A stretch of 64,000 nucleotides of DNA, taken from positions 1,488,001 through 1,552,000 of the forward strand of contig LSRY02000009.1 in assembly GCA_001643675.2 (NCBI GenBank), read 5' to 3'. The DNA comes from Monocercomonoides exilis PA203 (taxonomy: Eukaryota > Protista > Preaxostyla). The notes beneath the pieces were generated by a model. That model saw only the letters and a program-made list of their open reading frames with translations, had not been told where the DNA came from and did no database searches. Positions 2,873 to 56,949 of the stretch are shown here, one piece after another (position 1 is the stretch's first letter; every line of letters starts with the position of its first letter). The position numbers and the translations under genes are program-made.

Positions 2873-2989
2873 GAATAAGCGAGGACAGTCTAAATGGGAT
2901 ATAATCACATCGGTTTTAGCATGACTTTTTGCGACTATATCCAATTGCGATTACACTCAATTTCGTTTTTAATAGAAAATAATTAATTA

Positions 2990-7506: not shown

Positions 7507-9339
7507 TATTCAATGAAATAATGAAGACTCATTAGTTTGTTTTTTATCTTTTTTTAAAAAATTATATCAATTTCTAATATTATCCGATAATTTTTTTTCA
7601 CAAGTCCTTTAATGTTTTCGAATCAATTAAAGTTCAAAAACAAGTTGTTTATGTATGTGTTGATGCAATACATTTTATAAATCTGAATAATTTCAATTCA
7701 CTTATTTTGCGCAAATAAAATGTTTCTTTTCATTTCATAATTCGTGGAATTCTTCTTTTCATCAATTTTTAAAACTGTTAAAGCATGTGGATTACATTCA
7801 CAAAAGGTTTAACAATCAAAGAATGTGATGTTGATGCGTTTTAAATTATGTATTGGTGACAAAGAATTTATTCAGTTTTTAAAATATTTTGATCCTTTTG
7901 ATCTTTGAAGGAATTTGTTGAAAACAACAAAAATCATTTCCAGAATAACATAATTATTATGCAAATAATATTTGAAAGTTTTTGCAATCAATTTTATAGA
8001 CATAAAAAATATTTGTTTAATAAATTAATTTTCGTAACTCAAATGAACTCAGTCTATCTCAAATGAACTCGGTTTATTCAAATGAACTTGATCTATTCGA
8101 ATAAACATGAGTTCATTTGAATAAGCCTGGTTTATTTTAATAAAAAAAATCTATTCAAAATTCATCTTTTGATGTTAAACATTATCATTTTTTCAATTTA
8201 TTTAATTTTCAAATTTTTAAACTGTATTTCTTTGAAGAGAAATTCATTAACATGAGGAAAAAACAATATATGTTGATTGAATAAAACAAGTTAATATTTA
8301 TATATGTAATGAAATAGAACAAACAAATAAAAAAAGAATTATGAAATGTCAAAATTTTTTTGAAAAGTAACATCAGATCAAAAATCTGACCCATGGAAGT
8401 TAATTATTATTCATCCCGTTTCCATAATTCAAATGATAAAATCAAACTATCATAACAATGTTTATTGGTTCGTTGCAGACTTCTTTGAGAGATGAAATAT
8501 TTAAAAACAAAAAATAATATATCCAATTTTTTGATCAAAATAAAAATTTCAGTTTTTGAATATGAAACAGTTTTATAAGCTTGGATTATTTTGCAACAGC
8601 TGGTTCATGAAGTACGCAATGTGCGTTTTAATCCTTTTCAAGAAAATATTTATATTTTGACAATTATTTGAATTTAAAATTAATCAGGATTTTGCATTGA
8701 ACATCCTTGACATTAACATTTTTTAGATGCAAAGCCAGCTCACACAAGTTTGTGAAAGCTGAGATTAATGATTTAAAGTTTATATTCTATTTTTAATCAT
8801 TTTTATTTTTCTTGTTTCGAACTCACAAAATCATCTTTTTCTTTTTTATTCTCTGCTATAGAGCAGTTGAAATCTCAATATAATCGATCAAGAACAATAA
8901 ATGCTTTTTTTTGTTGCCTTGTTTCGTTCGAAAGAGCATTGGAGGCAGCAATAAAGAGTCATGTTATAACAAATTCCAAATTGAACAAGTTTGTGATGCC
9001 ATTTTCACATAAAAGAAGTGAAACTATTTTGTTTCCCTTTAGCTGGCTAAGAATTGCTAACGCTGAAAAATTGCTTGTTCACAAAAAATGAAGAAAGCGT
9101 TGAAGAAATAATGAATGATGGTCTGAATATAACAGATAGAATCATAGTTCAATTGCAGTTTGTGTCAATTCAATCACTCGACTTTTCAAGAGCTATTCTT
9201 TATGTGCCGACATCCATGATTTTGAACATCAAAAAGCTGATGACGAAGACTTTTCAAGTGGATAAAAAAAGCGGATTGAGCTTTTCAAAGAATTCAAATG
9301 GAGAAAATGAAAGAAGCAATGAAGCTGAATAAGATATAT

Positions 9340-12300
9340 TTATTGAATGGAGCATATTCGAAGAAGTCATCCAGAAAATAACTAAAAGTGTACAGCACAA
9401 TCAGCTTGAGCTTTCACTCTCTCGAGTTCCCATCTTCTGCACTTGACTGCCTATACTCGGCCATCGAGCGCTGTCATGCCATTTTCGCCACATCTGCAAA
9501 CATCAGGATCGAGTGCCTCGATTTCCTCTTCAGCCAATCCTTTTCGCACACAGGCAGTGCTGTTGTGCACTGTACCGATGACCACCTCTCGCTATTTCTC
9601 ACTCTCCTTTGTCTTATCTACCTTATTATCTTTTTCGCCAGCTGCACAACCAATGCTCCTCAACTACGTTGTAAGTGCAGTCGAACGAATTTATTTGATT
9701 GTCGCCACCTGTACAGCATAGCGCACAAATACATTTCTCAGTGAAATGTTGAATGCATACGACGGCGTCTGTTTGCAAAGCACTTCCAGAACAATGCTCT
9801 GTGTCTTCGCAGCGCATCCAGTTTGAAGTGGGATCGATCATCCTGGAATTTGCATCAGCACCTCCACCGACCTCTTCACTCTGATCGTGTTATTCAGTTC
9901 CACATCACACACACATACAAACCCGGCTCGCATCTTCTCCCACTTCGCATGCTTCATCACCTTCCGCTTTTTCTCATTTTCCTCTCACATTTCGCTCACA
10001 TCATACACAAACTCTTTTACAGCCATCTGCTTCATCTCCGCTCGTTTCTTCAAACCATTCAACTCCAACTCTTGTCTTCTCTCTTTCATTTCTTTCTCCT
10101 TCTCCTTCCCCTCCTTCGAATGCTATCTCATACACAAACATCACCTCTTCTGTATTTTTGCTCCAAATCAGTGAACTTCTTCTTCCTCAGCTCATCTCAA
10201 ATTCCTTCTCCCTACAAGCCGGACATAAATAAATGTTATTCATCACACCAGTAAAAACCTTTTACGCAAACGAATCGGAACATTCAATAGCAATTGCAGA
10301 CACTTTTCTAAAATCCCTCGCACACACACTCGCATCGCTGAACACCCACTCCCACACATTCCCAAACAGATTCCGCACATTATCAAGTCAGCAGCTCAAT
10401 CAGCGCAGAATGAGAAGACGTCATGCGATGATATTTGTTCTCTTTATATCCTTTAGTGTTCTCCATCTTCTGTATCTTTGCAACTTGCACTATCTCTTCT
10501 TTTTCCTCTGCACCACCTTCATCACCATCTACAAAAGAACCTCGAAAACCACATGAAGAAAAGAAGAAGTTAATCCATTTTGAACAACCTCTTATTCCAT
10601 CTTCATCACCATCGATATGACCTTCATTTCCATTGGCATTGCAACCTGAAGATATTATTGAATAGCCTCAAAGAAATAGCTTCTAATGTCAGATTACCAA
10701 AGAGGCAAAGCCCCAGTATTGATCATCCTCTGAATTGCATTAGATTGTATCAGCATTCTCAGCCTCACCCCTGCCCCTGCTCCTGCACTTGCACTTGCCG
10801 TGCCAATCATCGGCATTATCATTCTTTCTCCAGGCCTTGCTCCTTTCTCCATCTTCCCCATCTGCCCCATCAGCCCTTGAACATCTGTTGCACCCCCCCA
10901 GCATACGCAGGATCAGCTTCAGCTCGTCTTTGTTCCGGATGAAGCACCCGCTCATAGTGCGCGTGTATTTCAGCTGCACATCGTTGAAGACAATCTTCTG
11001 CATGCCAGGAGGAATCCCTTATTTCTTCTGCACAAGCTCCTTCAGCTCCTCCACAGTAGTCTCCTTCGTCACACTCACTCGAATTATCTTCCCTTGCATC
11101 GTCCTCACATGCACTACCATCTTCCCCAAATCCCCTCCTTCTTTGAATTCTCGTCCCGATACCCCTTTCACACTGCTCTTTCTTCCTCTTTCTTCTTCTT
11201 CTTCTGCCTCAATGAAACCCCCAACATCCAGTCCCGATCGAAGCACTGTCTCAAACGCCTTCTCCTCTTCTTTCTCGTCTCTTTCTTGCGACTTCAGCTG
11301 CACTTCAGTTTTCTCCACCAGCGCCATACGCCTCCTCATACTCCTCTCCAGTAATTCTTCGCCTTCTGCACCAGCTTCATAAGCCTTTCCAGCACAAACA
11401 CTTGCTCCATGCATTCAGCCTCGCAAACAAAGCTGGCTCTGAATATTCATCAAACAGCCCCATGTCACACGTGCACAGCAAATGATGGTCAGCCACCATC
11501 TTCTCCTTTTTGCTCGCTAAACTCGGACGAATTGCTTTCGCAAAGAATTTCAGCACATTTTTGGGCAGTAGAATATGAGCTCCTCACACACAATTTCGCT
11601 GTATCGATCACAAAGCTCTCGGAATTTCTTCTTCCTCTCTTCTTCTTTCTCTTCATCCTCATCCTCATCCTCATCCTCATCCTCCTCAACCAACTTGTAC
11701 AGCTCCTCAAATACATTACACCACTCATCAAATGCACTCACATTTGCATCAAATCCCTCGTTCTTCTTTGCCTACGCCTTCTTCATGCACTTCAGCAGAT
11801 GAAGAATTCCTCCAAAGCAACTGAAGCTTTCATATGAAGATGCCGAAAGATCTTTTATCTTCTGCGTCGAAACACATTTCGAAAGATTTGCTTTCTTCAA
11901 TGACACTCCTCCTGTCTTCTTCCCATTTAAACTGGCGCATTTACATTTGCATCTTGATGGTGTTGATAAAGATGATTTCATTTACTCCTCCATCTCCTTC
12001 TCCTTCTCCTCTTCCCATAGTTTTCATTCTCCTGTAGAACAGACTCAGATCCACCTTTTCCACCTCCGCCACCACATGCTCATCGTCTTTCGTTTCCACT
12101 GTCACATTACTCTACACATTTTCTGTATTCACCTCCGTCGAAATAACCGCACGCCTCCTTTTCCCTTCCCCTGGTGCTTATTTCAGCACAACTGTTGTCA
12201 TCTTCCCCAAAAAGTCGATGTTTTTCCAGTTTAAAACTCTTCTCCTCCAGTTCAACGCTGCTCCCATTCATTCTTCAATCACTCTGTTCATCTTCTTCTT

Positions 12301-13680
12301 CATTCTCTTCCTCGCCATCATGTCTGTCAAAATCTCCGCTGGCTGCTCCTCCGCAGATCGTGTCCAATGCAACTGTGTTCGCATCCTTCCTTTAAGTCTC
12401 ATTCGTCACAACCACATGCATCAGTGCAGACTGCGAATCCATAGCATTCCTTAGCTGTGCAGCTGACGTCTGACTTCGCTGGATGAATTCTTGCTGTGTA
12501 CCCAGCCTCTTTTTTGATGTATTGAACGAGCACGGCCCTCTCGCCTTCTGCACCTCTACCTGTCTCCCCTCATGCAACAGCGTTAGCGGCATCTCAGCAT
12601 CAAAAGCGCGATCAAGCACACTCACAAAAGATTGCACTCGCATCATTACCTTGCAATTGCTCATAATCTCCTCTTATTTCCTGCTTCTGCTCCTTCTCTG
12701 GTATCCATGTCATCTCAACGCACTCCACTTTTTTAACACAACATTTTCCCTATCATCAATGTGTCATTCTAACCTTCTCTGACACTCCATTGCACAGCTT
12801 GTGCATGTTCTGCAAGAAGCATGAAAAGCATGGAGAATCAGCTCCTTCCAATCGATGCAGATACCACAACCAAACTCGCGCTCCTCTGCTTTGTGCACGA
12901 ATCGTTCGGCAAGTCTGCAAAACTCGTCTGCCAAGTCTTCAGCAATCGCCTGCTTCATCACTGCAGCCACTTGATGCATATGGAACCAAAATCTTACACA
13001 GCTCCAACACTGAGTGCCTCTTCGATATTGTGCTTCTGCTGTATCTCCACCCGTTGATCCACACCGCTGTACAACTTCTTGGAAGCAGCATGTTCAACTC
13101 ATCCAATATAGCCTCCGCTTGTTCATCTGCAAATCACCACCACATCATCCACAGGGTCACGTTTCGGATTAGTCCACAGCTCGTCAGCTCTCCACCAGAT
13201 GAAACAACAACGAGTATTTAACCCTTCTGCTTGAATTCTTCTTCAACTCCTTCTTCCTCCGACTTTTCTCGCTCCTCCAGCACCACTAGCGCAATTGCCG
13301 CTTTCAGAAAAATAGCATCATCTATCACCTTCCCAGCAGCCTCCACTATTTCCCCCACAATCTCCGCCACTTCACACGCTGAAACGCCTCGCCAATTGCT
13401 TCGTCGTGCAGCTTCACAACTGAATATTTCAATTGATACGATCACCTTGAATGCAGCGACGGGTAAAACAGATCGTAGATCAACTGGAACGCAATCACTT
13501 CCGCCACAAAGATCCGCTAGCTCCCCGACTTAATGCACTCCAATTCTCAAGATACAGAAGCGGCTCCACTTGGGGAACTGAAAGCACCACACTCGCACCA
13601 CAACATTCCCACAAATAGTCAACAAAGTGCTATTTCCATGGCATTTGCTGTGCATGCACACTTGCGACTTTAAGCATCAC
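9340..13680 (-). pseudogene. Family-X hypothetical gene (decayed) with an internal ubiquitin-like domain; cargo of element A
   Basis: Minus ORFs 13218-13445 (LKAAIALVVLEEREK), 12764-12979, 12392-12664, 11550-11741, 11019-11414, 10740-11003; many stops; boundaries approximate. Confidence 0.6.
10893..11120 (-). other. Ubiquitin-like domain, 76 codons ending LRMLGG, one in-frame TAA
   Basis: MVVHVRTMQGKIIRVSVTKETTVEELKELVQKK*GIPPGMQKIVFNDVQLKYTRTMSGCFIRNKDELKLILRMLGG aligns without gaps to ubiquitin; the stop is at the Glu34 position. Confidence 0.85.
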
Positions 13681-15097
13681 AACCCCAAAGTTCATTTCAA
13701 AATCATTGTTAGACTCTTATCCCGATTATTTTGATTCAGCTGCAGCAGATACATCTGAAAGATCAATCAATTCTTTTATCAACCAATGTTATAACAACAG
13801 TGAAAATGGATGTGACTCAAAAAAATTTTTTTTGTAACCAAAAATGAGAAATTTTTTAAACCTTCATCATAAAAATGTGACGTTAGTAAAACATAATATT
13901 CTGTCTGATATTTTTGTGATTGGATTTTTAATTGTTTTTTGAACACACCTGTAAATATCTAGTACAAATTTTTCTTCCATGAATTGATGTATTTTGTAAT
14001 GAAAAATACAAAAAAAAAACACAAAACAACAAAATTTATCTTCGATTCTCATTCCAACAAGTGAAAATGACAAATTTTTCGTTTCTATTCAGAAAATCAA
14101 ACGAATATTCAAAATAATGAAATGAAAAAGAAGAAAACAAATGAATATTATTAATTAAACACAGATAAATAGAAAAAGGATGTTCACCAACGCTTATTCG
14201 ATGAAATACATAAATGTTGATGAAACATTTGCAAATTAGAAATTCAATTATTGTTGATAGGAACAAAAAAAGATAACAAAATAATAAACAATATATAAAA
14301 TGGGAACGGAATGATCAACAAAATCTGATCATTTTTGATCTTTTGTGGGACAAAATTAAAGTCGAGAAACTTTTCAAAAAATTTTTGACAAATGGGTCAT
14401 TCTTTATGAAAAGTCGCAAACGTTTAACTGATCTGAAAATCAGATCAAAAATGATCAAAAAATGTTGATCATTCCGTTACCATTATATATTGCAAAAAAT
14501 TATTCAATTGAGTTTTATCACCTATCCCCAAATATTGCGTTTCATTGAAACAAATTTCATATATTATTTTTACTGTTTAATCATATTTATGTTATTAAAT
14601 ATTATTGTCTTGTTTTTTTGAAGCAACTGAATAATTTGTTTATATTTCTATGTTTTCATTTCAACTGTTCGTATTACACGTTTTGATTTTTTGAACAGAA
14701 ACTCCTTTTCAATTATTTTCCTATGTTAAATAACAGATAGATTTTCACTTGTTTTAATTTGAATATTTTGAAAAGAAATTATTAAATAGGAAATTTTCAT
14801 CTATTCTTTCCTCATTGAAAATAAAAGAAATTCAAAAAGTTGTTTTCACAAAGCAATTTTAAGTTTTATTATAAATAAATAATTGACAACTGCAATTTCT
14901 TGTATTTAATGTCCTTTTATAAAAAATTCAAAAAAGAAATGATATCTCATGTTTTGAATCAAAACATGAATTGTGTCTTAAATAGCTTTCAACTTTTCAT
15001 TTTCTTTTTTTTCTCATCTATTTTTTCTCATTTCAATTTCCTTCTAAAATAAATTCTGTTCCTTTTTTTCAATCAAATCAAGATAGATGAGATTTCG

Positions 15098-18000
15098 GTG
15101 ATGATTGACGTTTCTAATTTGAACAAGGATGTTGTGTTTGTGCCACGAAAGACACTGCAATTTTGTGTGATGAGTTGCATCAAAAAGCTTCTTGTGGGAG
15201 TGGAAGCGATTCAATTGTCTCTTCGCTCAGCGCCTTTGTCTTCTTCGTCTTCTTCTAGTGGAGCAGCACGCAGATCTTCTTTATCATTCCTGGGTCCAAT
15301 AAGAGAAGAGAAGAAGGTGACAGAAAATGCTCAGTTATTTGCATCTTCGTCTGCAGGTGCAATTTACCCTTCAGATGCCTCGAAGGTGGAGGCTTCATAA
15401 ACGCTTGAAGCAGCATCGATGAATGGAATCGAGAGGAGGCTGAGGATAGTTGTGAAGAAAACAGCTGAGCTGCAAATGCTGCATGGTTATGAGGATGCAG
15501 CTGTTCCTGTCGCTGAGGATGTTGTATATGCTGCGAGGTTTCAGTGTTGGCTTTCAGTGCTCTGCTGAAGAGAACGTGCTGTGTCCGTTCAATGTGAAAT
15601 ATTTTTCATTCTTCTTGTAGCTTTGCTCCCGTCACTTGAGGATTTACCGAGAAAGAAGTCGTCGAAGAAGCTGTTATTAACAGCGGTTGATGTGGATGCG
15701 TTCCTGCCAATCCGCAATACTCCTGTCCATCGCTGGCTTCATTGGTCATTGAATGGCTGGAGAACCGATAGAAGCAGTCGAGACAAGCGGAGTGATGAAG
15801 CTGTGCAACAAAATGAGGAGGTGAATGGTTGCAGTGAATGAAGCAGGAGAGTTTGCGGAGAAGGCGCTGGAGGCGGTGGGGCAGAGGGGCTGATGATGGA
15901 AGATGTCGTTCTGTCGCCTGCAGCGATAGTGCTGAATTTGCTGGAAGAAAGAAAAGAAGAAGAAGAAGTTGGAAAAGGAAAAGGAGGCGAAGCGGATGAG
16001 CGGGCTGACAGAGCAGATGAAGGAGAAGGCCAATATCTTCTTTTTCTTCAGGATTATTTCGAAGCTAAGCTAGATGTTCAATGCAGAGGTGAAGCAGGTG
16101 AAGGAGCTGCATGAGCAGCTGGCAGCAATGAAGGAGAAGAATGAACTTTTGGATGTGGTGATTTTGAAGGAAAAGTTAAGATTGCAGCATGACGAAGTTG
16201 TGGGTGTGGACAGCGCTGTTACGCTGGTGAGATCGGGATTGAAGCTTGCCACGTCTTCTTCGTCGGTTTCTGTGTGTGGCAGGATGGCTCCGTCTTCAGC
16301 TTAGTTGATCTTGCCTTCGGGGCTGCGTGAAAAGCACCACGAAAAGTTTTCCTCGAGTATCGGAGATGGTAGTGCTGTGATGCTTGGCCCGAATCCAAGC
16401 TTGAAGGAGCTTTCTGTGAAAGTGGAGAGTCTGGCAAGTGTAGCGAGAGAGGCAAATTGTGGTGATGGAGGAGGAGACTGAAGTGAAGGAACAAAGTCAG
16501 AGACAAGCAAGAGGTTGGAGAAGAACAGTGCTGAGGCCAGTGTTGGTGGTGAATGTGGAGGAGGAGTGGATGAAACTGTGAGACAGAAGAGTAGCAAAAT
16601 GGAGAATGAATAGAAGATGCTAATTGCGTTGTCGAAATTGCAGAAGCAGATGATAAGCATGCAGAAGGCGCTGATCAATGAGGTGATTGTAAAGCAGCAG
16701 ATGTCGTTTGCGCAAAAGAAGCAGGAATAGATGAATATTTAAGCTTCGTTTGAAGAGGTTGCTTAATGAACTCCCGGAAAGGTGAAGAAGCTGGAAGAAC
16801 AGGTGGTGCAAGTGGACTTTGGCGGGATCAGGGAAGGCGGGGCAGAGGAGAAAGGGGGGAGAGGGATGGATGGGGCGGGGAGGAGGAGGAGGAGGAACAG
16901 AAGCGGAGGGGGAGAATACGAGGAGGCAGAGGAGGGGGGAAAGGCAGTAGAAAGTAATGCAATAGCGCTATATGGGATTCCGTTGTTTCAGCACAACGAT
17001 CCGAAGAGAGAGAGGGGGATGATTGGATGTAAACTGTGGTTCAAACAGTAGCAAAGAAAAATGAAGGGAAGGCGAATGTTGTGCAGTGACTGTTCATGCT
17101 TCTTGAGCATATGACAGACAGCAGAGAACGTGAAGAGTCGGAGTGGCTTGTGACTTCGCCTGGTGGATTGAGGGCAGGGATGTCTGGAGCAAATGGTGTG
17201 CCTTTGCAGGCGGGATCGATGGCGATGGAGTGGCTGACGAGCGCAGTATCTGTTTGGCTGGAACAAGAAAAGTGTAAATCAGTACATATACTTCGGGTTC
17301 CACACTCGCGGCGGTGGTCTGTGCAGATGGAGCGTTTGTTGAAGTTGCTGAAGATAGGTCTGCGGTCGTAGCTAATGTGGAAGCTGTCGAGGATCCGGGG
17401 GTGATGCGGAGACATTATTTCAGCAGATCTTTAAATGGGTGAGGGCGTGCAGAGGCAGGAATTTGGTGACTTTGTGCACGTGTAGCTGAGGGTGAGGCAC
17501 GCAGCGCAGAAGAAGAGCGAGGAAGAACTATTAAAGATAATCTTAATTGTAGAGCTGTTTCTAAATGACTTTGCAAATGTGCAGTTGTTATGGAAGCTTG
17601 TGTGGGAGGAGTGCAAAGGAGACAAGTTGTGGTTTTCATGACAACTGCAAAGTGCTGCTTGAAGGGGTGCTGCCGCAGCAGCCGGTGGAGGAGAGCGAGA
17701 ACTTCCTGATGGTGACGTTCCGGGTGTGCCGGAAGTGCATCAACACGGTGCTTGAAGGGGCGTCGGAGAAGAAGATCAAGAAGATTTTTTGGGGAGTTTG
17801 ATGGGATACAGTCTGAGAAGACGTATGCAGATGCCTCAATGTTTATGGTGTTTCTGCTGAATAACTTCAGGTAAGAAGCAGCTTCCTGATATTTGCGATG
17901 AAGCTGACAAGTTACAGCCTTTTCAGCAGTATTTGAATTATGCGATTGTGAAGGCGGCAAGATGGTGTTGGTCAACTTGGAGCAGGAGTTTCATTCGGTA

Positions 18001-18308
18001 TCGAAGGTGACGTGTGAATTGTTTGGGCTGAAGCAACAAGTGTGGATTGTACAGTCGGTGGAAGAGAAGAAAGAATAGCGGTAGGTGTAGTTCCATATTG
18101 TGCGGCTGCTGGAAGGGATGGTGAGGCTGCAGCTGTGGAGGATGTGCAGTCGATGGTGAAGAAAAAAGAAGGACAGTGTGTGCTTGTGCACTTCGTGAGA
18201 GATGAAGTTACACAAGAAAATGGCATTGTAGATGGAGAGAAAGAAAAATTTTTCAATAATTCATCAACATCTGTTTCTTCATTGCTAAAGAAAACAAATA
18301 CTGAATGA
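15098..18308 (+). pseudogene. Family-X hypothetical gene (decayed); cargo of element B
   Basis: Plus ORFs 15098-15400, 15893-16114 (EDVVLSPAAIVLNLLEERK), 16074-16304, 17096-17371, 17565-17801, 18042-18308; shares motifs with the A and D copies. Confidence 0.6.
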
Positions 18309-18309
18309 A

Positions 18310-19524
18310 AGCGATGAAGATGAACAATGCGCTCCAATTATTTGGTGGATATTGGATGTTATCAACCATCAAATCACCAATAGAATATTTTCATCAGCGT
18401 TTTTATCTCGTCGTAACCTTCTTCTTTTCCCTCTTTTCCTTCTTTCTTCAATGACATTCGATTATTTTTGGAGAATTTGAGAGAAGAAGGAGAGTGAGAA
18501 GAAGGAGTTAGAAGAAGAAGAGGAGGAGGAAGAGGAAGAGGAAGAGGATGAGGATGAGGAAGAGGAAGAGGAAGATGAGGAAGAAGAGGAAGAAGAGGAA
18601 GAAGAGGAAGAAGAGGAAGATGAGGAAGATGAGGAAGATGAGGAAGATGAGGAAGAAGAGGAAGAAGAGGAAGGGAAGCCAAAAGAATTGAAGCTACTTA
18701 CGAATTCCTTGAGCAATTCTTGAATGATGAGCTTCCAAAAGAAACTGTTCCTGAAGTTGAGCTGTTAATCACAAGGACACATCATAAGGACATCTTCACT
18801 CTATCTGAAACAACTCAAATAAATACAATCCTTCCACAATTGCTAAGTTTGAATTAATAAGTGGTTGATGCAATTTATTTCAGTTTCATGCATGTAATTT
18901 CTATCTCATTTCCATTTAGCAGAAAAGATGGCTTCTTGAATGAATGGAACTTTATTGTGTAGTTGTCAACATGAAGAATTCCATTTTCTATCTTCAGCAA
19001 CATTGAATTGAGAGCAATAGGCTGAATCATATTAGCTTCACAAATAGAAGAAACGTTTACAAATGAAAGAGAAAGCTGGCCATTTGCTTTTTGAATGATT
19101 AAACTTCCAGAATAAGAAAAAAACCGAACAAAGTTGAATTTTACACTTTCGATCCGAACATTCTCTGAGGTTGCAATGAGATTTCCCATATTGCCATCGA
19201 TTGTTGAGTTCAGATGCACTGAAGCAGCTGACTGAGATTGCAACGAGTGGAAAATCACATCCTTCGCTTAGCATTCCACGTTCACGATTGTTTCCCCCGA
19301 AACTAACAGCTGAGAATACGATGAAGGAATAATGTGTTGCACTCCCTGATTCAATGATCGACAAGGCATGTTGAACTCTCCACATTGCTCGCTGTTTGTG
19401 TCATTACCTGCAACTGAAGAAACAAATATTGCATCGCTCTGGTATTTTTAACAACCCTCAACAAAAGATCTTCCTTCCTCACAAATGGGTCTAAAGTTCA
19501 GCCCCACATCGCCATTTATGTCAT
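18310..19524 (-). pseudogene. Fragment of surface-protein family with a poly-Ser tract
   Basis: ORFs 19038-19385, 18875-19258, 18462-18716 (frameshifted); IFVSSVAGNDTNSEQCG-type motif near 19380-19430. Confidence 0.5.
18500..18672. repeat. GAA/GAG/GAT purine-rich microsatellite (poly-Ser on minus strand)
   Basis: Directly visible. Confidence 0.85.
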
Positions 19525-26158: not shown

Positions 26159-26199
<41 letters not shown>

Positions 26200-29186: not shown

Positions 29187-29251
<65 letters not shown>

Positions 29252-34015: not shown

Positions 34016-34187
34016 TGAATGGTTAACGAACGCTATTTTTCCATGAACAGCAGAATCGGTCTCGTATTAAAAATAGACAGTAAAGACATTAATAAAATAT
34101 ATATAAAACACAGTTCCACTTTATGGAAAAAATACATTGCATCAAAAATAGAAAGTGACGGCGCAATTTTAACATATAAATACACAA

Positions 34188-35654: not shown

Positions 35655-36129
35655 TATTTCAAAAATTGTGTCAATTCAATTTCCACATCTGACGCTTTGC
35701 GACAAATCCAATCAAAATTTGTCAAGAATAAAAAACTTCACAAGTTCCTCATATTGCATTAATGAAACAGCATATGTCAAAATTTTTTTGAAAAGTGACA
35801 TCAGATCAAAAATTTGTCCCATGGAAGTTAATTTTTTATCAAACAGTTTCCATAATTCTTATGAAAAAAACAAACTTTCACAATAATGTTTGTTGGTTTA
35901 TTGCAAATTTCTAGATGAGAAAAAATATTTTGTAGCAAAAAATTATATATTCTGTTTTGTGATCAAAATTCAAATAGCTGATAAACAATAAATATTCTTT
36001 TTCTTTTCTTTGTCCATGTTGGAATTACTGAGTTCAAAAATGCTCAAGGTATATCATGAATCAATTTTTATCGAAATTTAAGTATTCTGTTGATGTTTCT
36101 AATTTAAATTTGAACTGAAATTTGCAATG

Positions 36130-43750: not shown

Positions 43751-43888
43751 TTTATAATTGGTTGAATTATTTGAACAATTGTTTATAAGACGATAAACAT
43801 TTGAAATGGAAAAAATAAATAAATAAAGTTGCAAGTCGATGCGTGTTGTCAAAATCTGATGAACTCAAAATGTCTGCAATGATACTAA

Positions 43889-46800
43889 TTAAGTGGAACT
43901 GGAACCATTATCTTCTTCATCTTCATAATCTTCTTCATCATCATTGTCTTCTTCATTATCTTTTTCTTCTTCTTCTTCGTCTTCATCTTCGTCTTCATCT
44001 TTGTCTTCATCTTCGTCTTCATCTTCATCTTCATCTTCGTCTTCGTCTTCTTCATCAGAAAGAATAACAGCTTCCTTCCTTCTTTCATCATCTTCAACAT
44101 CCCACCTGCAAACATTATTTGGATGATTGAAACTTTGTTCTTCACTTGATTCTTCACTTTCTTCTGTTGTTTCATCTTTTCTTCCAAATAATTCCGATCT
44201 TGTATGCTTTTGTTTCTCTCCTTCAAATCTGCCTTGAATTAGAGAAAGTGTCTGTTTCCCAGTTGGAACAGACACGCAAGAATACTTCTTGCTTGTAACT
44301 TGCTTTTGTCTTCTCTCGAAGGAAACAGCAACCCTCACTTCACTCCATCTTGTATTCTCTTCTTCGTTGAATGGAGCAGCGAAAATTCTTCCTTCTTCGC
44401 TGCTCCATAAAAGATTTAATTTTAAATCTTTAACCCTCAGCTTCGGTGAGACTCTCACCTGAAGCCGAGGGGAGTATGGGAGGAAGTGCCTAATGATGGA
44501 GGCACTTCCTATCTCATCTGTTGATGAGCTGAATCTTTTTTTAAAAAAAGAGATTAGCTCATCAACAGATGAGATGTCCTCTCGAGAGTTCTGTGCTTCT
44601 CTCGAGAGGACCCCAAACTCTCCATCAACCTCGCTTTTTCCGTGTCCTTCTGCAAAGAAGGAAAGCGAGGTTGATGAGAATTTCTTGAAAATGGAAGATG
44701 TGGGATGGAGCACGAAGTGGAGGAATGCTCCATTTCGAAAGTGTGGACCGCAATCAGCCCACACTTTCAGGCATGATCCTGAGTGGAAGTGTGTTTTGGA
44801 AATGATGTTTGAAAGAGAGACTTGAAGACAATCAATTGCGTATCTACTGTCTTTTGATAAAACAGTGGAAAAAAAGTGAAAACATTCTTTTTCTATTGTT
44901 TTGTTTTGAGTAAAATACGCAATTATCCCAAGGTGGGAAATTTCTTTCTTTTTATAGAAATCTCTGCTTATTTGCGTTTGTTTGATGGGGAGTGTCCAGT
45001 TTTGTTTGAAATCAAGCAAAACCAGTACCTCCCCATCCTTCAGCTGATCTGAACAATTATGGAAACATTTTCTTTGCTTTTTTTGAATAATTTCATGAAT
45101 ATTCAAAGTGTGTAATTCATCTTTTTCTTTCTTTGATAATGAATGAGTTTTCATTCTATTTTCCAAACATTCCTTTCTATAGCACAAATTGCAATAATCT
45201 GTTCTCTTTTTTGATTTTTTAATATGTCTTGTCATCTTGAAGAATGTTGAAAAACTCATTTTTACACCTATTTCTTTCATCATTTGTTTCCATAACTCGC
45301 GTTTGGTTCCAAAATAAATTCTTTCTTCATTTTCAAACCACATATTTCTTCTCAATGGCATTTTATGATCGAATTTGTTATAAACATTTAATTCAAATAA
45401 TTTCTTGTTGTGGTTTATTAATTGTGATAAATGTTTTGTTTCAAAATCGCTTGTGTTATCGATTGAATCTTCACATTGAATATTAACTTCTAATCTACCA
45501 TCTTTATCATATATTACAGAATGCTGAATGTTACATATATCATTGTTTATCAAATGATTTAAAACATATTCATTATGCACCCGTACATTGTTTAGAATAC
45601 AATAATCTAATGAACAATTTGAAGATGAAAACGAGTGGGGAGTGAGGGGAGAGGTGGAGGAAGATGGGGAAGATGATGAAAATGAGTGGGGAGTGAGGGG
45701 AGAGGTGGAGGAAGATGGGGAAGATGATGAAAATGAGTGGGGAGTGAGGGGAGAGGTGGAGGAAGATGGGGAAGATGATGAAAATGAGTGGGGAGTGAGG
45801 GGAGAGGTGGAGGAAGATGGGGAAGATGATGAAAATGAGTGGGGAGTGAGGGGAGAGGTGGAGGAAGATGGGGAAGATGATGAAAATGAGTGGGGAGTGA
45901 GGGGAGAGGTGGAGGAAGATGGGGAAGATGATGAAAATGAGTGGGGAGTGAGGGGAGAGGTGGAGGAAGATGGGGAAGATGATGAAAATGAGTGGGGAGT
46001 GAGGGGAGAGGTGGAGGAAGATGGGGAAGATGATGAAAATGAGTGGGGAGTGAGGGGAGAGGTGGAGGAAGATGGGGAAGATGATGAAAATGAGTGGGGA
46101 GTGAGGGGAGAGGTGGAGGAAGATGGGGAAGATGATGAAAATGAGTGGGGAGTGAGGGGAGAGGTGGAGGAATAGGAGAAAATTGGTGTTGAAGAATGGA
46201 AATTGGATGGAGATGAAGAGATTGATAAATTAAATGGATGAAGTATTTGATGAATTTTGTCAGTGAAATTGTTTGAATGGATTGGTGATGATGAATGATT
46301 TATGTTTTGTGTATTTTCTGATGTCTGAATAAAAATTTTGTTTAAATTATATATTATTATATTTATGTCAATTATTTGAGAAACAAACGTGAATGTGTTT
46401 TGTTTTATTGAATGATTTTTCTGATTTCCTGTTTTTAACTGTGAAATATTTTATTGACATAGGTTTGCTGTTTTGTATTTCTTTTGCTTCTTTTTGCATG
46501 TTGCAAATGAAATCTTCTGAAGTGTTCGTTGTTGTTTTATTTGTCAGAAAATTCATGTCATCATCACTTAAATGATCCACAATTTTGTCTCTTTTTTTCA
46601 ACGAAGACTGACAACTTTCCGTGGTGTGCTCTTTCAGCCACCATTCACAAAACAAAAAAGAATACAATGATAAAGCTAATATATTTATTAAAAAAACGAT
46701 TAAAAAAACAAAATGATCAAACGTCTTTTTGTCTTTGGTAGAGAGGGTTTTGATGAATGACAAATCGAATAACCATTCATCCTAAGCATTTTTTTTGCAT

Positions 46801-47181
46801 GTTTAATTTGATTGATAGAACAATTCCATCCGGCTTTTAATAAATCGCAACTTTCAACTGCATTCAGGAATGTTTGCAACAAAAGCGTTTTGTTTTTCTT
46901 ATCAAAAATATCAAATAGAAATCCGGCGTAAAGCAAAATTTTATTGAATTTCTCTTTGTTAATAAGAAAAAATGATAAATGATAAATATGTTTCTAAATA
47001 TATTATTTCTACCATTTAATATTTCATTGAAATATTGCAGAACTTCTTTTCCTTTAAAAGAATGTTCCAAGTAATACAACAATAAGATATTTTCTTCGTT
47101 TTTAGATATTTGCTTTAAATAAATATCGAGTTGATCACAAATTTGCGATTTTCGACTTGGTGATAATTCTGAAAATGTCAT
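43889..47181 (-). CDS. Sola-like (Sola2-type motifs) DDD transposase, predicted 4 exons, 1040 aa
   Basis: Exons 47181-47013, 46953-46723, 46675-46389, 46324-43889 joined by GT-AG introns (59, 47, 64 nt) give 3123 nt in one frame; DYCNLC..H..H, LLDFKQNW, WADCGPHFRN, FFAEGHGKSEVDGEFG; acidic tail. Confidence 0.8.
45624..46171. repeat. 51-bp tandem repeat, ~10.7 near-identical copies, inside transposase exon 4
   Basis: Unit GAGTGGGGAGTGAGGGGAGAGGTGGAGGAAGATGGGGAAGATGATGAAAAT; reads SSTSPLTPHSFSSSSPS in the transposase frame. Confidence 0.95.
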
Positions 47182-47625
47182 TTTTTGTTTCTTTAAATAT
47201 TATAATGGTAATATTCCTCTTTTAATTTTGTGATCATTTTTGATCTTTTGTGGGACAAAATTAAAGTCGTGGAACTTTTCAAAAAAATTTAGACATATTC
47301 AAGTTTTTGAAATTAAAGGAAAGAACCTTTGAAAAAAATATATGAGAAATGACAAGCAAAATTGACTCGTTTGTCAATTTGCCATTGACAGATTAAAAAG
47401 GGGAGGGGAAAAAAATCAAATTTGACAGGCATAACTTGATTGTTTGTGCAATCCAACAAAAGGATTGTGCTTAACTTTAAATATAAAAGCAAACATTAAA
47501 ATAAAGATCAACAGAAACTAAATCTCTCAAACTTTAATTGTCAAAATAAATAAATAGATAGATATTTCGAGTTATAAATACCCAATTAACGAGTGTGTCA
47601 ATTTCTGTTCTTTCATTTGAAGGAA

Positions 47626-48745
47626 TTATTTATTAGCAACCTGATAAATAAGCTGAAGCATTCTATTGAAAGCTTCAACCACCATTTCGAGAAGCGCCTG
47701 CTTCGCTTCCCCAGCAACGTTACCTTCAATCCCATTGCATTCAACCCACATTTGCTCAAACACACATGCCAAAAACACAAAGTCTCCCAGAGTGAAAAGA
47801 TGTGCTTTGTCCACAAATACACTTTCACATTTTTCTGTGTTCATATCCTCATTCTTTCTTGTAGATGGGCAACTGATCTCCGATTGTGACCCGCTCTTCT
47901 TCCCTTCTTCCTCCCCTTCTCCAGGAACAAACAAAGGATTCAAATAAAACAACCCTGCACCTCCATATGACCCTCTTGCTTTCCCCTTTCCAATCTTCTC
48001 CAGCTGCTTTGAATAGCTCAACTGTCCATCTTCAGCTTTCTCCGCCTCATTTCCAGCCTCTCCCAGAACCTTAACACGCTTTCCATCCCATCCAAGCAAT
48101 GCGTGCTCTTCAACAGCAGATAGCTCTGCAATTGGCAGGAAAGCGGGCTCCTTTGACGAAGGATGAGCCTGGTGCGTGTTCAGACCAAAGCGCAGCAGGA
48201 AAGAAGAAAGGATCGTTGTCTGCTGCGGAAGAGGAAGGGACAAAAAGAGGTTAATTTGGTTCAGGAGATGCGAGGAAAAGAAGGATTTAAGAGATGCAAG
48301 CGTTGCCAACAAACAATTCAACGTGCAACAATTAGATGGATGCAGAGACAGCTCTGTGCATTCTTCACCAGAATGAGAACAGTTATTGGCACTAAGCCAT
48401 TCACTCCCTTTTCCTTTCGAATTGCAACTTGTCTGTCTGTGAGCAAATATCGAACTCTCATACACCTTTTCATTGAACGTATCATGAACGCATGCATGCA
48501 AATTCTCATCCATTGAAAAAGTTGGCGAATAACGCAACTCTGAACGGGATCGCGTGAGAGATGTGATGCAGATCGGAATATCACCTGGAGGCGGCGTAAC
48601 AGAAGCAACATATTCCCGCTCGAGAAGATATTGCAGCAAACTAAAAAATCAGACATTCATTTCATAAATGAAAAAAAAAAAATACAGTGCATTCGTTTTC
48701 CCAGATGAAATAACACCGAATGAAAGGAAACAAAAAACACAAAAA

Positions 48746-48781
<36 letters not shown>

Positions 48782-51769
48782 TTTTTTGATATTCAAATGG
48801 GAATATACATATATGCCCATTCCCCAAATATTAAATATTCTCATGAACAACAATCAAGCAAATAAATGAATGCAAACTCTTCTTCAGTCACTTCGTGCTT
48901 CACTTTCTCTTTAATAGCTGAAATCGTCTCCTTGCTGAACATCCCCATTTCCTTCGCTAATTGAACAATAAGCTGCCTCACAGAAGTCGAATGGTCCTCT
49001 CCCAAATTGAACACTCTCAGCAAGTCTTCCACTGCAACTGACGAACTGCCAGACAAACCCGTAGTCAAACTCGTTTTCTCGCTTTTCTCTTCTTCTGCAC
49101 TTCTTTCTTTCGAGAGCGCCAATTCTTTCTCTTTTCTCATCTGGCTCCTCAATCGCTCTGCTCTGTCCAAGCTCAGGCATATTCCATCCACAATGTCCCT
49201 CACATTCGTATAATCCCTTCTGAACGACCCGTCCCCATACATCGTCACTTTCTCCTTCCCTTCTGAATGCAGCATCCGAGTGAAGCAGGGAATCGCCATG
49301 TCAATCCGCCCCATTGCCGAGCTGCCCAGCACCTCGCCATCAACAGTGAAAAATCGGAGCCCTGTGAAGACAGGTGGAATTGGCGAGTGCGCAAGCACTG
49401 AAGATGGAATGAATGTGGACACGGGAGGAGAAGGAGGCGCTGTTGTTGATATCATGGGAGTGTGGGTTAATTTCGATATAAATTCAGCGGCTTGCCTTTC
49501 GTTTTCAACCTTTTGTGAAACAAGGAAGGAAGAATGCAAAAATGAAAAATGAAAAATGAAAAAAAGACTCAACAATATCCTCAAGTTATCTTACAACCAC
49601 AAATAAATATACAAAAGCATTCAACTTTCTCACTCACACATCTCTTCACACTTTTGTATCCGCGTATATGCATTCAGGTGGCCCAACGCAAAGATGCTCT
49701 GCACAAAGTCCGTCTTTCATCTTTCCATACACAGAACTTGAAGAGGCATACACAATGCTCTGTGTGCCCCACCCTTCTCCTCTCTTCCCATCGCTCCAGT
49801 CTCCCACAGCCAGCTCAAACACATTTTGTGTCGTCAACACATTTTCTGATCTGAAAAGCTCCGGATACAGCATCGACGACCGAACACCAGCACGCGCTGC
49901 CAGATGAACAATATACGGAATGCGCACTTTCGTTTTCGATTCTGAATGAATCTGGCTATTGTCATTCGCTTTGTCCTCTGAAACAGGACATTTCACTCCA
50001 GTGACATATTTGTATGCTTTTTCAATTTTCGCGTGAAATCCTTCTTTGTCTCGCAAATCGTGGTAAATGAACACAAAATTCGTCAAAAGCGATATAACCC
50101 CTGTTCCGTTGCTGTCTTCACTTCCTGCCTCTTTCTTTTCTCCTCCTCTCTCTTCTTTCCATCTCTTCCCTCCAACCGCACGAGCCACTTCTTCCAGCCT
50201 TGCAATCGCATGTTCCTTGATTGACGATGAATAAAAATCATTCAGCGAGTCAACTGCAATCACAGCAACCCCGCTCATCAGAAGTCTGTGGCACACCCAA
50301 GACCCAATAAAGCCAGCTGCTCCTGTCACAAGCGCAATTTTTGGCGGATCGCTTGACTCAATTGAGGACGACTGCGCAACAGACACGCTCTCATTATCAA
50401 CAGAAGAAGTCAAAAGCGAAGCTGGGAGGAATAAAGAAGGAGGCGGTATGGGGCGGAGCAAGAAGGCCAACGACTCCGATTCCTTCTTAATCGCTTCCCT
50501 TTCCTGTTGTTTGCCATTCTCCTTCTCTTCCTTCTCTTCCTTCTCTTCCTTCTCGGCTTTTCTTTCGCCTTCTTTTCCGCTGCAATCGTTTCCCCGCGCA
50601 CACACACATGAAGGCAAGCGCAGCGCATTCACAGCCGCACGCAATTCCCTCAGCGAATCAAAAAGCCTCGCTTTTGGCGCTCAGCAGGTAGAATCCTCTC
50701 AATCATACCTAAAAGAGCAGTGGCATCTGTTTTGACCGACTTGAGATCAGGCTCATCCTTTGTGAATGTTTGGCACAGAGAATAAACGAGCGAATGAAAA
50801 GTGGAAGAACCCGAAGAACCCGAAGGAGCAGAAGCAGAAGCAGAAGCAGAAGCAGAAGCAGAAGCAGAAGCAGAAGCAGAAGCAGAAGAAAAAATCTGTC
50901 AGTTTCTGATTCCATTCAGAAAATTCTGTCATCTTTTTCGAAACAATCTCAACCAGTGAAAGCGGTGCAACACAAATCCCAGACGAAAGAGGGAACACCT
51001 CATTTTCTGAACCACAACTCGAGGAACTCCGTTCTTTTCCTTCCGAACTCGCTTTCCCCGCCGTTTCCACGCTGCATCCATTGCCCCCATCCTTCACAGC
51101 CTCCACTTTGTATACGCAACTCCCCTCCAGAAAGAAGAAAGCACATTCTTCTTGTTTCTTCTCAGTCTTCTGCGGAATTCCCGGCCAATGAAACTCCTTC
51201 CCGCCACAACATCTGACCGATTCACACAAACAAATCCCTTTTTCTGCTTTTCCATTCTTTTCAACCCCAGTCCACGGCAATGCACTCACAGGCAGCCACG
51301 CATCTCTTGCACAGTTCTTCATGCAGTAGACAAACGGATTTATCAGATCCAACGAAGACAAAACAGATGAAGACTCCAATGGCAATTTTTGTTCCTTCCC
51401 CAGATATTGCTCAACAAGCTCATCAATCAGTGTTCCAAGCAACGGATACGCTGCCTTCACTGCTCCAATCGTTGCAACACAGCCCTTTTCATCTCCTTCT
51501 TTTCCTTTCTTTTCCTTCTCTTCTATTGAGAATTCTGCTCCTTTCACTTTCTTCTTCATTTCCTCCACCGCTTCCCATATCACATCCATCCCTCCTTCTC
51601 TTTGTGTATTCTGCTCAGTCAGCGTGCCCGGGTGCGTCATCTCGTTCAGCAGAAGCCTGGGGTAATGTTTCTCATGCAAGTTCTACTCATTTTCACATCC
51701 ACACATATTCACAAAAATAAATGAATAACACACCAAAAATCATCATTTGCATTTTAAAAAAAAATGAAA

Positions 51770-51810
<41 letters not shown>

Positions 51811-52987
51811 TAAAAAAGAAAGATAGATAGAAAAGAAAAAAGTTTGATAATCACAAAATAATAATCACATAATTATTCTCAAAACCCCAACATACATATT
51901 TAACAAGAAGGAACGTAAGCTCTGCGCTAAATTGAACAATTCGAAGCTTCTCAACTTCGTCCTTCTCCAACTCTGCCTCTTTTCCAATCCGGAACAGCCA
52001 TCTGCTGCGTCCAGTTGCACCGCCGCTCAACACTGCCCCACACGAATCCTCCGCCTTCGATTCCTCACATTTGCTTTGCCCTCCACAGCGAACAATATTC
52101 TCGGTGAGCGGGTAAACAAGCGGATGCGAGTTTTCGCTTCGCGATGAATCAAATGACGGAAGATGCACAACAACATTCTGGCACCCTACAAAAAGCGCGC
52201 TCAAATACGCAGCAACCCCTTCGCCTTGGCGAGATCTTGGCTTCAGTCAAAATTTGAGGTTGTGCAAATTTTAATATCAAACAATAAAATTCACCCAATG
52301 ATTCACAAAAATATTTATAAAAAAATTATTTTTTTAACAAATAAAGAAAGAATAGAATGAAACAATAAACACATACCATTGCACTCAGCAGCATCTCCTT
52401 TATCGAACAAATAGAAGCTGCCAGCGAATTAACTTCCAGCACTGTCAAAATCGCTGCCAACAGCAAAAGCTCTTTCGAAATCTCCATCTTTTCCTAACAG
52501 ACATTTCAAAAAAAAAAAAAAAAAAAATGCCAAAGATAAAACTTCATCAATAATAACAAAAATAATGAAATCAAATTCGAAACCATCGGCATTTTATTTC
52601 GTGTGTATATTTTGAATGAAGCCCCAAGTTTTTTGTGCGGAAAATGCCTCTGCACCAATCCCAACGCTCTTTCAAAATACTCCTTTTCCAAAGCACCGCG
52701 GCAATCAATTGCGCAATCACATGATGCATCTTTAACTCTGTTTTTCGAAAACACCGCTTCGAGGAAGCAGTCCACAAGAATCACGTTTCGAGGCTTCGAC
52801 GCAAATGCCGGCAAAAACGAAGTTTCTCTTCGAAGTCCAGGTTCCAATCCACAAAACACCATTTCAACAACAACAAAAGCACAAAAACACAAGCACACCC
52901 AAGCTGAACTGGAAATGGCAAGGACAAATAATTCTGCGGATGCTCTCCAAATGCTTTGTAGAATTCGCTCGAAAGTTCTTTATTCAT
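47626..52987 (-). CDS. Second (inverted) copy of the UDP-sugar epimerase gene, with homopolymer indels
   Basis: ORFs 47626-48639, 48841-49584, 49646-50644, 50753-51679 match the left copy; +1 near 50890 and -1 near 50660 split the long exon. Confidence 0.75.
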
Positions 52988-53863
52988 CGTCAAATCGGAA
53001 ATAAGAAGATTCAATCAAAAATCTGATTTGATCATGCCCATTTTAGGAGTATCTGTTCAAAACAAATTGGGATAAAATTTTATCCTTTTCCAATTTTGTT
53101 CCACACAATATTTCCTATAATTTTTTTCTCAACTTTTGAATTTTTCTGAATTTTTTTCATTGTTACAGAAGATTTATTATGAAATAATTGCAGAAAAAGT
53201 TGTGAACAAATCCTTATTATTTTTCAAAAAACCAAAAATTTCGTCCCAAATTTGGAACCATCACAATAGTTGGGCATCCCGCATTTTCAATGGGAATCAA
53301 TAAACACAACAGTGAAAAGAAACATTTTCATCAAAAATTCTCATATCTTTCAGAGGTGATAATGAAAAATCTGATTTTTGTGAATTTTGACAGAATCATT
53401 CATTCATCAAAACAGACAATCACCAATATCAAAAGTTAGTGTTCAAAATGAATAACTCACTTTGGACTGTTTGAAAGATATGTGGGTAATTGTTATTGAA
53501 ATAATATTTTGGATGTTGATAATTTTTGTGTGAAGTTTTGTTGTGATTGGTTTCAAATGATCACTGAGAAGAAACAATACCGTACAAAGATATCTTCATC
53601 TTTCTTTCATCTTGTGCATAAGCTACTGTTATAGCTGTGATGTATTTCACATGTCAATGATTATTTTCAAGATTGTGACAAAAAGACTATTGAAATCTAC
53701 ACCCAAAAAACAATACAGTCAAAACAGGAAATAATCACATCGAGCACAAACACATTTGTTTATTATAACATTTTTTGAATTTATTTCCATTTATTTTTCA
53801 TTGCATGTAATCACAGGACCAAATATATAAAATTGCATTTTGTCTCTTAATGGGTTCATTTTT

Positions 53864-54192
53864 GGAGATATGATATTTCAAATATAGATCCAACCGGACC
53901 GGATCAGTGATATTGATTTATTTATCCATGCTACTGCGATACACGATATTTCAATAAAAAGTTATAGAAGAGCTGTGGTATGAGATTTATGGACAGCAGC
54001 ATTGCTTTTGTTTCATTGTTTATTGTGAGGTGATGTGCAATGTCTATGAACAATTATATAAATAAATGATGGAATACAGTACTATAGTCTTTGTTATTGA
54101 TAAATCGTGAATGCATAAGTAGTTTGATAAATTAATGATGAGGAAACTGATGTATATGTCCGGTCGATCTATATTTGAAATATCATATCTCC
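53864..54192. mobile_element. MITE (329 bp) with GG...CC termini
   Basis: Perfect 27-bp TIR GGAGATATGATATTTCAAATATAGATC followed by ACCGGAC; no TSD; abuts the duplication end. Confidence 0.85.
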
Positions 54193-54465
54193 AGGAAAAT
54201 TGATAGTTTTAACCATGTTTTAAGTCAATAAGTGTTATCAGCATTGTGAATTGACATGTGTGAATTGACATGCGTGTATTGAAAAAATTATTATCAATAT
54301 TTTTCTTATATCAAAGTTTAAAAAGTTGATGGGAAGAAAGAAGATATATGCAACTGTTGAAGAAGTAAAGGAAGCACAACAGAGACAGATAAAACAGTAT
54401 CAGGAAAGATGAAAGCAACAAACAAAGTATTACAAAGAACATGTGTCTGAGAAACAGAAGAATAT

Positions 54466-54556
54466 GTATAAATTTTTTTGAAAAGTTCCACGACTTTTAT
54501 TTTGTCCCACAAAAGATCAAAAATGATCAATATATATTGAACATTCCGTACCCATT
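54466..54556 (+). mobile_element. R-type terminus of a fourth Sola-like element (D); other end not found in window
   Basis: ATAT then GTATAAATTTTTTTGAAAAGTTCCACGACTTTTATTTTGTCCCACAAAAGATCAAAAATGATC, nearly identical to the R end of C. Confidence 0.8.
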
Positions 54557-56943: not shown

Positions 56944-56949
56944 TTCTAT

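Follow-up and report, generated by a model that had tools for sequence, protein, structure and literature searches.

The 64,000-nucleotide stretch analysed here (hereafter the window), which was taken from the genome of the oxymonad Monocercomonoides exilis PA203 (assembly GCA_001643675.2, contig LSRY02000009.1, positions 1,488,001 to 1,552,000 of the forward strand), contains three complete transposable elements, E1, E2 and E3. They are genuine cut-and-paste DNA transposons that moved recently and belong to one family. This family is likely to be a single Sola2-like one, the passengers of which are decayed pieces of very large genes that were amplified while they decayed. A sequence-only reading of the window had proposed a gene-capturing system of Sola-like elements ('Pack-Sola'); its description of the elements held, and its account of their cargo has to be narrowed. 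Genome searches covered 82,301,135 bases in 101 contigs; C1, C22, C91 and similar names denote contigs of the same assembly, and positions without a contig name refer to the window.

Element ends were located by using the pattern G-N12-TGAAAAGT, which occurs seven times in the window, at 8348 (+), 14389 (−), 14394 (+), 22956 (−), 35776 (+), 47294 (−) and 54466 (+). Shuffled versions of the window contained 1.65 matches on average, and none of 100 shuffles reached seven. These are the seven related ends that had been noticed in the sequence-only reading, and their alignment separated the two types described there. The L ends (8348, 35776 and the reverse complement of 22956) have about 200 bp in common, with the arrangement CAGATCAAAAAT..CCCATG..AGTTAA; the R ends (14394, 54466 and the reverse complements of 14389 and 47294) are characterised by GATCAAAAATGATCA..CCGT..CCATT. 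All three bounded units carry an L end on one side and an R end on the other, and the flanks read AAAT[E1]AAAT[E2]AAAT and ATAT[E3]ATAT, with perfect 4-bp target-site duplications (TSDs). The three complete elements of 6.0, 8.6 and 11.5 kb with matching TSDs were confirmed in this way.

E1 (8348–14389, plus strand, 6,042 bp) is non-autonomous, with its L end at 8348 and its R end at 14389. Its L terminus (8348–8547, plus strand), which comprises a 21-bp terminal inverted repeat (TIR) and a subterminal region of about 200 bp, is 81 % identical to that of E3, and its R terminus (14296–14389, minus strand) is 94 % identical to the E3 counterpart across 64 bp. AAAT precedes E1 at 8344–8347 and follows it at 14390–14393, where the same four bases also serve as the left TSD of E2; the two insertions are stacked. 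E2 (14394–22956, minus strand, 8,563 bp), also non-autonomous, lies R to L between its R end at 14394 and its L end at 22956, and its right TSD (AAAT) occupies 22957–22960. E3 (35776–47294, plus strand, 11,519 bp), which is probably autonomous, runs from the L end at 35776 to the R end at 47294 between ATAT at 35772–35775 and ATAT at 47295–47298. The remaining end belongs to an orphan (54466–60190, plus strand) that consists of an R terminus, with 97 % identity to that of E3 across 64 bp, and, behind it, an E1-type interior in decay; no L end was found. The interiors are largely different, as had been noted before: E1, E2 and E3 align with one another at the termini only, apart from weak R-side similarity among E1, E2 and the orphan.

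The insertion of E3 is documented by an empty site. A repeat search identified 24110–32287 as an inverted copy (99–100 % identity) of 34188–35775 joined to 47295–53863, that is, a palindrome with arms of about 8.2 kb and a spacer of 1.9 kb in which E3 is present in one arm only. The other arm carries a single ATAT at 30702–30705 and reads, as the reverse complement, ..GAAACAGC ATAT TCAAGTTT.., whereas the occupied arm reads ATAT[E3]ATAT; insertion with duplication of 4 bp is thereby proved directly. The near-identity of the two arms shows that it happened recently. The palindrome itself may be real or may be a nanopore fold-back artefact.

The same termini were found throughout the genome. The 21-mer terminus, with up to two mismatches, gave 707 matches, compared with 3 for a reversed control, and many of these lie in pairs about 240 bp apart, which are MITEs (miniature inverted-repeat transposable elements). 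The L-specific motif gave 170 matches and the R-specific motif 52, with none for either control. For pairing, 100 L ends of the 170 were used, and a region of up to 20 kb inward from each R end was considered; a correctly oriented, inward L end was found for 38 of the 52 R ends, against an expectation of 0.63 with these 100 L ends. The paired elements measure 4.0–14.6 kb (median 6.0 kb).

Flanks were read for 29 elements. Fourteen MITEs gave identical 4-bp flanks in 11 cases and a one-base difference in three; all 13 larger elements (E1, E2, E3 and ten on other contigs; 4.7–14.9 kb) and two further MITEs had identical flanks, so that identity was found in 26 of 29. Cross-pairing of the flanks of different elements, a conservative null model in which the ATAT preference is kept, gave 40 % identity (P=4e-8), and random 4-mers from the window gave 0.7 %. 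Genome-wide, ends thus pair with matching TSDs above the chance level for AT-rich DNA, contrary to the outcome that the sequence-only reading had named as refuting it. The TSD is 4 bp long, mostly AWWT and most often ATAT, and the TIRs begin with G. A second empty site came from C26 and C23, where two segments of 16 kb or more that are 96 % identical are told apart by a MITE of 256 bp whose termini are related (GGGTGATTCTTTTTGAAA..); ATAT stands on both sides of the MITE in one segment and once in the other. An apparent 16.6-kb TIR pair at the C26 locus was rejected, being composed of two unrelated MITE ends.

The genome is AT-rich, ATAT is common in it, and the nanopore assembly contains many palindromes; ends and TSDs could on these grounds be put down to chance or to mis-assembly. 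This explanation is already refuted by the controls (0–3 matches, compared with 52–707), the pairing of ends, the TSD identity under cross-pairing and the two exact empty sites, and it is given practically no weight here. The family comprises several hundred MITEs of about 240 bp and about 170 L/R elements of 4–15 kb, about ten of which carry a transposase. In two cases one element lies exactly inside the 4-bp TSD of another, namely at E1|AAAT|E2 and in a pair on C91 (C91:~917.3k) that shares ATAT. Elements thus insert repeatedly into the TSD of one already in place, and the stacked TSDs suggest that the junction next to a resident end is preferred.

The transposase gene of E3 is located on the minus strand (43892–46781). 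An 853-codon open frame extends over 43892–46450, and a predicted 64-nt GT–AG intron (46388–46325) would join, in frame, an upstream frame at 46389–46781 that resembles the N termini of outside relatives; the two exons (46781–46389 and 46324–43892) would give 942 codons and no stop. The spliced model was checked for frame and stops, and searches were run on the exons separately. A further 5′ exon at 46867–47181 is possible. It is on account of this 942-codon open frame, given by one 64-nt intron, that E3 is regarded as probably autonomous. The catalytic core lies at about 44189–45430. Inside the frame, a 51-bp tandem repeat (45519–46322, minus strand, about 15 copies) encodes a 17-amino-acid, Ser/Pro/Thr-rich linker. 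At the equivalent place, a 93-bp repeat differs in number between the C48 and C91 copies.

When the core was compared with the genome of origin, at least 90 matches (from 414 candidates) were obtained, including about ten close relatives with 50–86 % identity. A sister group (36–41 % identity) is represented by dozens of intact copies with frames of about 992–1,430 codons; its members have a UCH/USP deubiquitinase domain, which lies upstream of the catalytic core. In an alignment of 18 sequences (A5), D140, E261, H263, G264, K265 and D269 do not vary, and D226 hardly does; the conserved blocks are T-D-x-C-x-x-C, D-F-K-[QE], S-x-x-L-S-x-D, D-x-G-x-H-x-R-N and F-F-x-E-x-H-G-K-x-x-x-D. An AlphaFold model (pLDDT, the predicted local distance difference test score, 71.5) contains an RNase H-like/DDE core, and the best matches among solved structures were IstA, Hermes and Mos1. 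As judged from this model, the E3 transposase is a DD(D/E) enzyme with an RNase H-like fold; the search of solved structures returned the generic DDE fold only and did not resolve the superfamily. A profile search of 1.84 billion proteins yielded 4,508 eukaryote-type relatives, which include proteins from Monocercomonoides, Blattamonas, Smittium and Heterostelium.

For assignment to a superfamily, core blocks of Sola1-1_AP, Sola2-1_HM, Sola3-1_HM and Zator-1_HM were taken from the supplement of Majorek et al. 2014 and compared by eye. All four blocks of the E3 enzyme parallel Sola2-1_HM: LLDFKQNWT with IIGDFAENYT in block 1 (DF-x-Q-N-W-T, DF-A-E-N-Y-T), LSKDSRY with ISDDITHD in block 2 (S-K-D, S-D-D..H-D), ADCGPHFRN with TDGCAGQYKN in block 3 (D-C-G-P-H-F-R-N, D-G-C-A-G-Q-Y-K-N) and SFFAEGHGK with NFFATSHG in block 4 (F-F-A-E-G-H-G-K, F-F-A-T-S-H-G). 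The blocks of Sola1, Sola3 and Zator fit far worse in the same alignment. The length of the TSD points in the same direction: a 4-bp TSD is reportedly the hallmark of Sola, and that of Zator is said to be 3 bp. The family therefore appears Sola2-like, an assignment made on four short motifs compared by eye and on TSD length.

Several observations weigh against this assignment, beginning with the narrowness of that basis. The E3 transposase had no match in Pfam; its neighbours by features and shape often carry DUF7869, a domain that only 3 of 58 relatives reached; and DDE_Tnp_ISAZ013, which we take to be a bacterial transposase family linked to Zator, occurs in 11 % of one neighbour cluster. 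With the generic character of the structural matches, these findings could mean that the transposase belongs to a separate, undescribed DDE lineage (the DUF7869 clade) or stands nearer to Zator/ISAzo13, and that the 4-bp TSD is convergent. Given the agreement of all four blocks with Sola2-1_HM, the far poorer fit of the other three and the TSD length, this is considered quite unlikely. Of the earlier proposal that the elements are Sola-like, the mostly AWWT, 4-bp TSD stands and the motifs fit Sola2 best; the putative membership is carried by these motifs and the TSD length.

The copies with a transposase fall into lineages that share different parts. A copy on C58 (9,330 bp, TSD AGTT) has the TIR type of E3 and is 86–92 % identical to it across most of its length. 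The copies on C48 (11,379 bp) and at C91:896-907k (10,984 bp) have 8.3 kb of interior in common with E3 (86 %) and differ from it in both termini, which are of a GGGT type, as well as in the 5′ portion of the transposase. A copy on C32 (14,934 bp; transposase 63 % identical) has only the transposase in common with E3. Interiors and termini have thus been reshuffled between lineages, and the pattern in E3 and its C48 and C91 relatives suggests that TIR subtypes recombined or exchanged modules.

E2, which has a GGGT-type TIR like the copies on C48 and at C91:896-907k, has nothing in common with the autonomous C48 copy beyond stretches of 80 bp and 92 bp; its family has at least 20 copies (76–94 % identity). 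Other members are about 5.3 kb long (for example C33:636806-642111) and are without a 2.9-kb segment (19867–22763). E1 has about 200 bp and 64 bp in common with E3 and C58, and its family has at least nine copies (67–86 % identity), of which a C15 member has GGGT-type termini. E1 and E2 are absent from the transposase matches in the genome, and their frames gave no Pfam match to a transposase family. They are to be seen, on these comparisons, as multi-copy non-autonomous families that have only termini in common with the autonomous lineages.

The cargo of E2 includes a gene-family fragment (18878–19400, minus strand) that is conserved in E2-family copies. Its frame at 18878–19267 has 60–70 % amino acid identity to at least 545 loci, most of them intact frames of about 2,500–2,600 codons. 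The frame has only 130–390 codons, compared with about 2,600 elsewhere, in copies of the E2 family and in elements on C32, C9 and C51, and is therefore a fragment there; the C32 element holds a different, independent fragment of the same family. The 2.9-kb segment that is missing from other E2-family copies is a separate repeated unit nested in E2 (19867–22763, minus strand), and its 386-codon frame (20834–21991) is a fragment from another giant family, with 1,846 candidates and frames of up to about 3,100 codons. The boundaries of the unit show an inverted similarity, AGAT..TGAAATA, that is weak, and a clear TSD was not found.

In E3, a truncated, stop-ridden gene copy (37031–43700, plus strand) is 85–91 % identical to six other loci; at the DNA level this cargo region occurs at about seven loci only. 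The frame at 37031–37987 matches, at 83 % identity, a section of a continuous 5,648-codon frame at C22:~43000–60300, which is the sole stop-free copy among the seven in-genome matches; the five copies other than those of E3 and C22 contain stops. A piece of 2.75 kb present in C22 is missing from the copies in E3, C48, C27 and C91:896-907k, all of which end before the C22 frame does.

E1 carries a decayed piece of a large gene (9400–13530, minus strand) with a ubiquitin-like domain (10743–11414) and a Cys/His-rich segment (12767–13093). The ubiquitin-like domain has an in-frame stop, between 11018 and 11022, where ubiquitin has Glu. Decayed copies of the Cys/His-rich segment lie inside most paired L/R elements, and part of the segment (amino acids 43–95) matches intact frames at four loci, three of them with 2,673–2,829 codons and one with 1,942. 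The intact frames of this type, of 1,942–2,829 codons, lie at C1:2524520, C1:2425327, C14:1592320 and C24:1068754. A better-preserved gene of this type (Pfam ubiquitin, 1.9e-12) was found on C26 and C23, about 4 kb from a USP-bearing transposase and on the other strand. When all frames of at least 70 amino acids in E1, E2, the orphan and E3 were searched against Pfam, only weak ubiquitin-family matches were obtained. On the C-rich strand, E1 and its relatives have long frames that were rejected as genes, being stop-poor antisense of purine-rich coding sequence.

The ratio of third- to first/second-position substitutions between copies was 2.6–2.7 for the transposase core, 0.8–1.5 for the cargo frames of E3 and 1.0–1.3 for the cargo of E1. 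By these ratios the cargo drifts neutrally, whereas the transposase is under purifying selection.

Two points speak against reading the interiors as captured host DNA. The E1-type gene adjoins USP-bearing transposases of the sister family and may for this reason be an element gene, as would be expected of an element-encoded accessory gene; and the intact 5,648-codon (C22) and E1-type frames may themselves lie inside giant elements. The interiors of E1, the orphan and most L/R elements would then be remnants, in deletion derivatives, of giant accessory genes that the family encodes beside its transposase. The distribution of the cargo can be read in this sense: the decayed E1-type interior is present in most L/R elements genome-wide, with both TIR subtypes, and adjoins the USP-bearing sister transposases as well; a ubiquitin-like domain together with a deubiquitinase-bearing transposase suggests a functional link; and of the roughly seven loci to which the E3-type interior is confined, five were examined more widely and proved to be elements of the E3 lineage. 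On the other side, the interiors are neutral and stop-filled within elements in which the transposase is constrained, and the autonomous C32 copy has an unrelated interior, in which a different fragment of the E2-fragment family is found. That family, with its at least 545 loci and mostly intact frames of about 2,600 codons, is too numerous and too long to be part of the elements. Derivation of the interiors from accessory genes is on this evidence unlikely, although it deserves serious attention. A host origin appears clear, from sequence comparison, for the E2 fragment only.

The preferred explanation, a Sola2-like family with decayed gene pieces as passengers, can be set out as follows. The family would be defined by the 21-bp TIR (G..TGAAAAGT) and by unlike L and R subterminal regions, both with GATCAAAAAT-type motifs that are putative transposase binding sites. 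The enzyme, a candidate Sola2-like DD(D/E) transposase of about 950–1,050 amino acids, would be encoded by a gene that adjoins the R end and is read inward, as carried by E3 and its relatives on C58, C48, C91:896-907k, C27 and C32, and would cut AWWT targets, of which ATAT is the commonest, with a 4-bp stagger. E1 and E2, in which about 80–270 bp of each autonomous terminus are left, and the several hundred MITEs were presumably moved in trans. Everything between the termini would travel as a passenger. Each passenger may have been acquired once or a few times and then amplified, to about seven copies for E3, at least nine for E1 and at least 20 for E2, and the cargo of E1 and E3 presumably passed from host to element. 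As a speculative route of capture, the outer ends of abutting elements could have been used, E1/E2 and the C91 pair each sharing one TSD.

The Pack-Sola proposal is retained in part by this explanation. Termini of an autonomous family do enclose neutral pieces of large genes; the host origin of such pieces is clear for the E2 fragment alone. Captures specific to individual elements, as in Pack-MULEs, were not found: each of the three elements is one member of a lineage in which many copies have that interior, which argues for a few captures followed by amplification. As an explanation of decayed paralogues, the proposal accounts for dozens of decayed fragments. The large families themselves cannot be explained by the elements, since their members are intact and match or exceed most elements in length.

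Among known systems, Sola2 (in Repbase, for example, Sola2-1_HM of Hydra; Bao et al. 2009) resembles the present family in its cut-and-paste TIR elements with 4-bp TSDs, in a DD(D/E) transposase of RNase H fold with which the four core blocks, compared by eye, appear to line up, and in a patchy distribution across eukaryotes. The present family differs in the size of its autonomous copies (9.3–15 kb), its asymmetric L and R termini, the Ser/Pro-rich tandem-repeat linker inside the transposase, the sister lineages with a fused USP/UCH domain and the oxymonad host; the putative membership, as noted, is by motifs and TSD length. Curated Sola1 elements in one bivalve survey have a mean length of about 5.4 kb and are among the longest DDE elements there (PMC10294476); the autonomous copies described here, at 9–15 kb, are about two to three times as long as this mean.

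The Pack-MULE and Pack-TYPE (Pack-CACTA) elements of plants likewise have autonomous-family termini around cellular gene fragments (here clear for E2 only) and, as non-autonomous elements, make decayed extra gene copies. They differ in superfamily and host kingdom and in their many independent low-copy captures, in contrast to the few cargoes found here, each amplified to between 7 and more than 20 copies; moreover, the cargo consists here of multi-kb stretches of giant single-exon genes, and the autonomous lineage (E3, C48, C58) carries cargo too. The hundreds of elements of about 240 bp that have the TIR and TSD of a few transposase-bearing copies recall MITEs with an autonomous partner (mPing/Ping/Pong), from which the present family is set apart by an extra middle class of about 170 L/R elements of 4–15 kb. 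Finally, ULP1 in some MULE and CACTA elements provides a parallel for a ubiquitin-system cysteine protease fused to, or encoded with, a transposase, which applies to the sister lineage and not to E3; the difference lies in the USP/UCH domain and in the neighbouring gene with a ubiquitin-like domain.

Other features of the window were recorded as follows. Each palindrome arm contains a gene similar to NAD-dependent epimerases/dehydratases with a GT–AG intron of about 130 nt (26290–29127; mirror copy 48841–51679). A 974-bp inverted repeat (99 %; 2979–3952 and 22970–23943) surrounds a decayed giant-family gene (about 5300–7400), E1 and E2, and its right arm begins 13 bp past E2; it was rejected as a pair of giant TIRs, as neither a clean boundary nor a TSD was found. 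A 424-codon frame with a Pfam DDE_1 match (pogo/Tigger-type) at 61491–62765 lies just past the expected L end of the orphan. At the window edges (1643–2026 and 63615–63998), an inverted pair of segments with about 54 % amino acid and 70 % nucleotide similarity probably represents another repeat family. An Rfam search of the window gave no matches.

Sola is among the least studied superfamilies of DNA transposons, and the carriage of gene fragments by DNA transposons is already known from Pack-MULE and Pack-CACTA elements. A literature search turned up neither an account of gene-fragment carriage by Sola elements nor a report of Sola in Metamonada. The carriage of gene pieces is new for the Sola2-like group, and the behaviour itself is of a known kind. 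The genome of M. exilis PA203 consists of 46 % repeats, most of which (28.9 Mb) are unclassified, and the genome paper (PMC8767320) raises two possibilities for these, novel types of repeat and gene families that have expanded. A wider claim, that Sola2-like elements are a principal driver of the growth of this oxymonad's genome and repeatedly sample and amplify multi-kb pieces of giant host genes, perhaps through the outer ends of elements inserted into one another's TSD, is possible and, in our judgement, doubtful. If it were true, the elements would account for a sizeable share of the approximately 29 Mb of 'unclassified repeats' and of the decayed paralogues in expanded families, and the intact frames of 5,648 and about 2,700–2,800 codons would be host genes sampled by the elements. 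With its recent activity, intact ends, open transposase frame and preserved empty site, E3 is well suited to a transposition assay. The dozens of decayed gene pieces could be taken by gene prediction for lineage-specific paralogues, and the Sola2-like family offers a concrete, testable answer for part of the unclassified repeat fraction of this genome.

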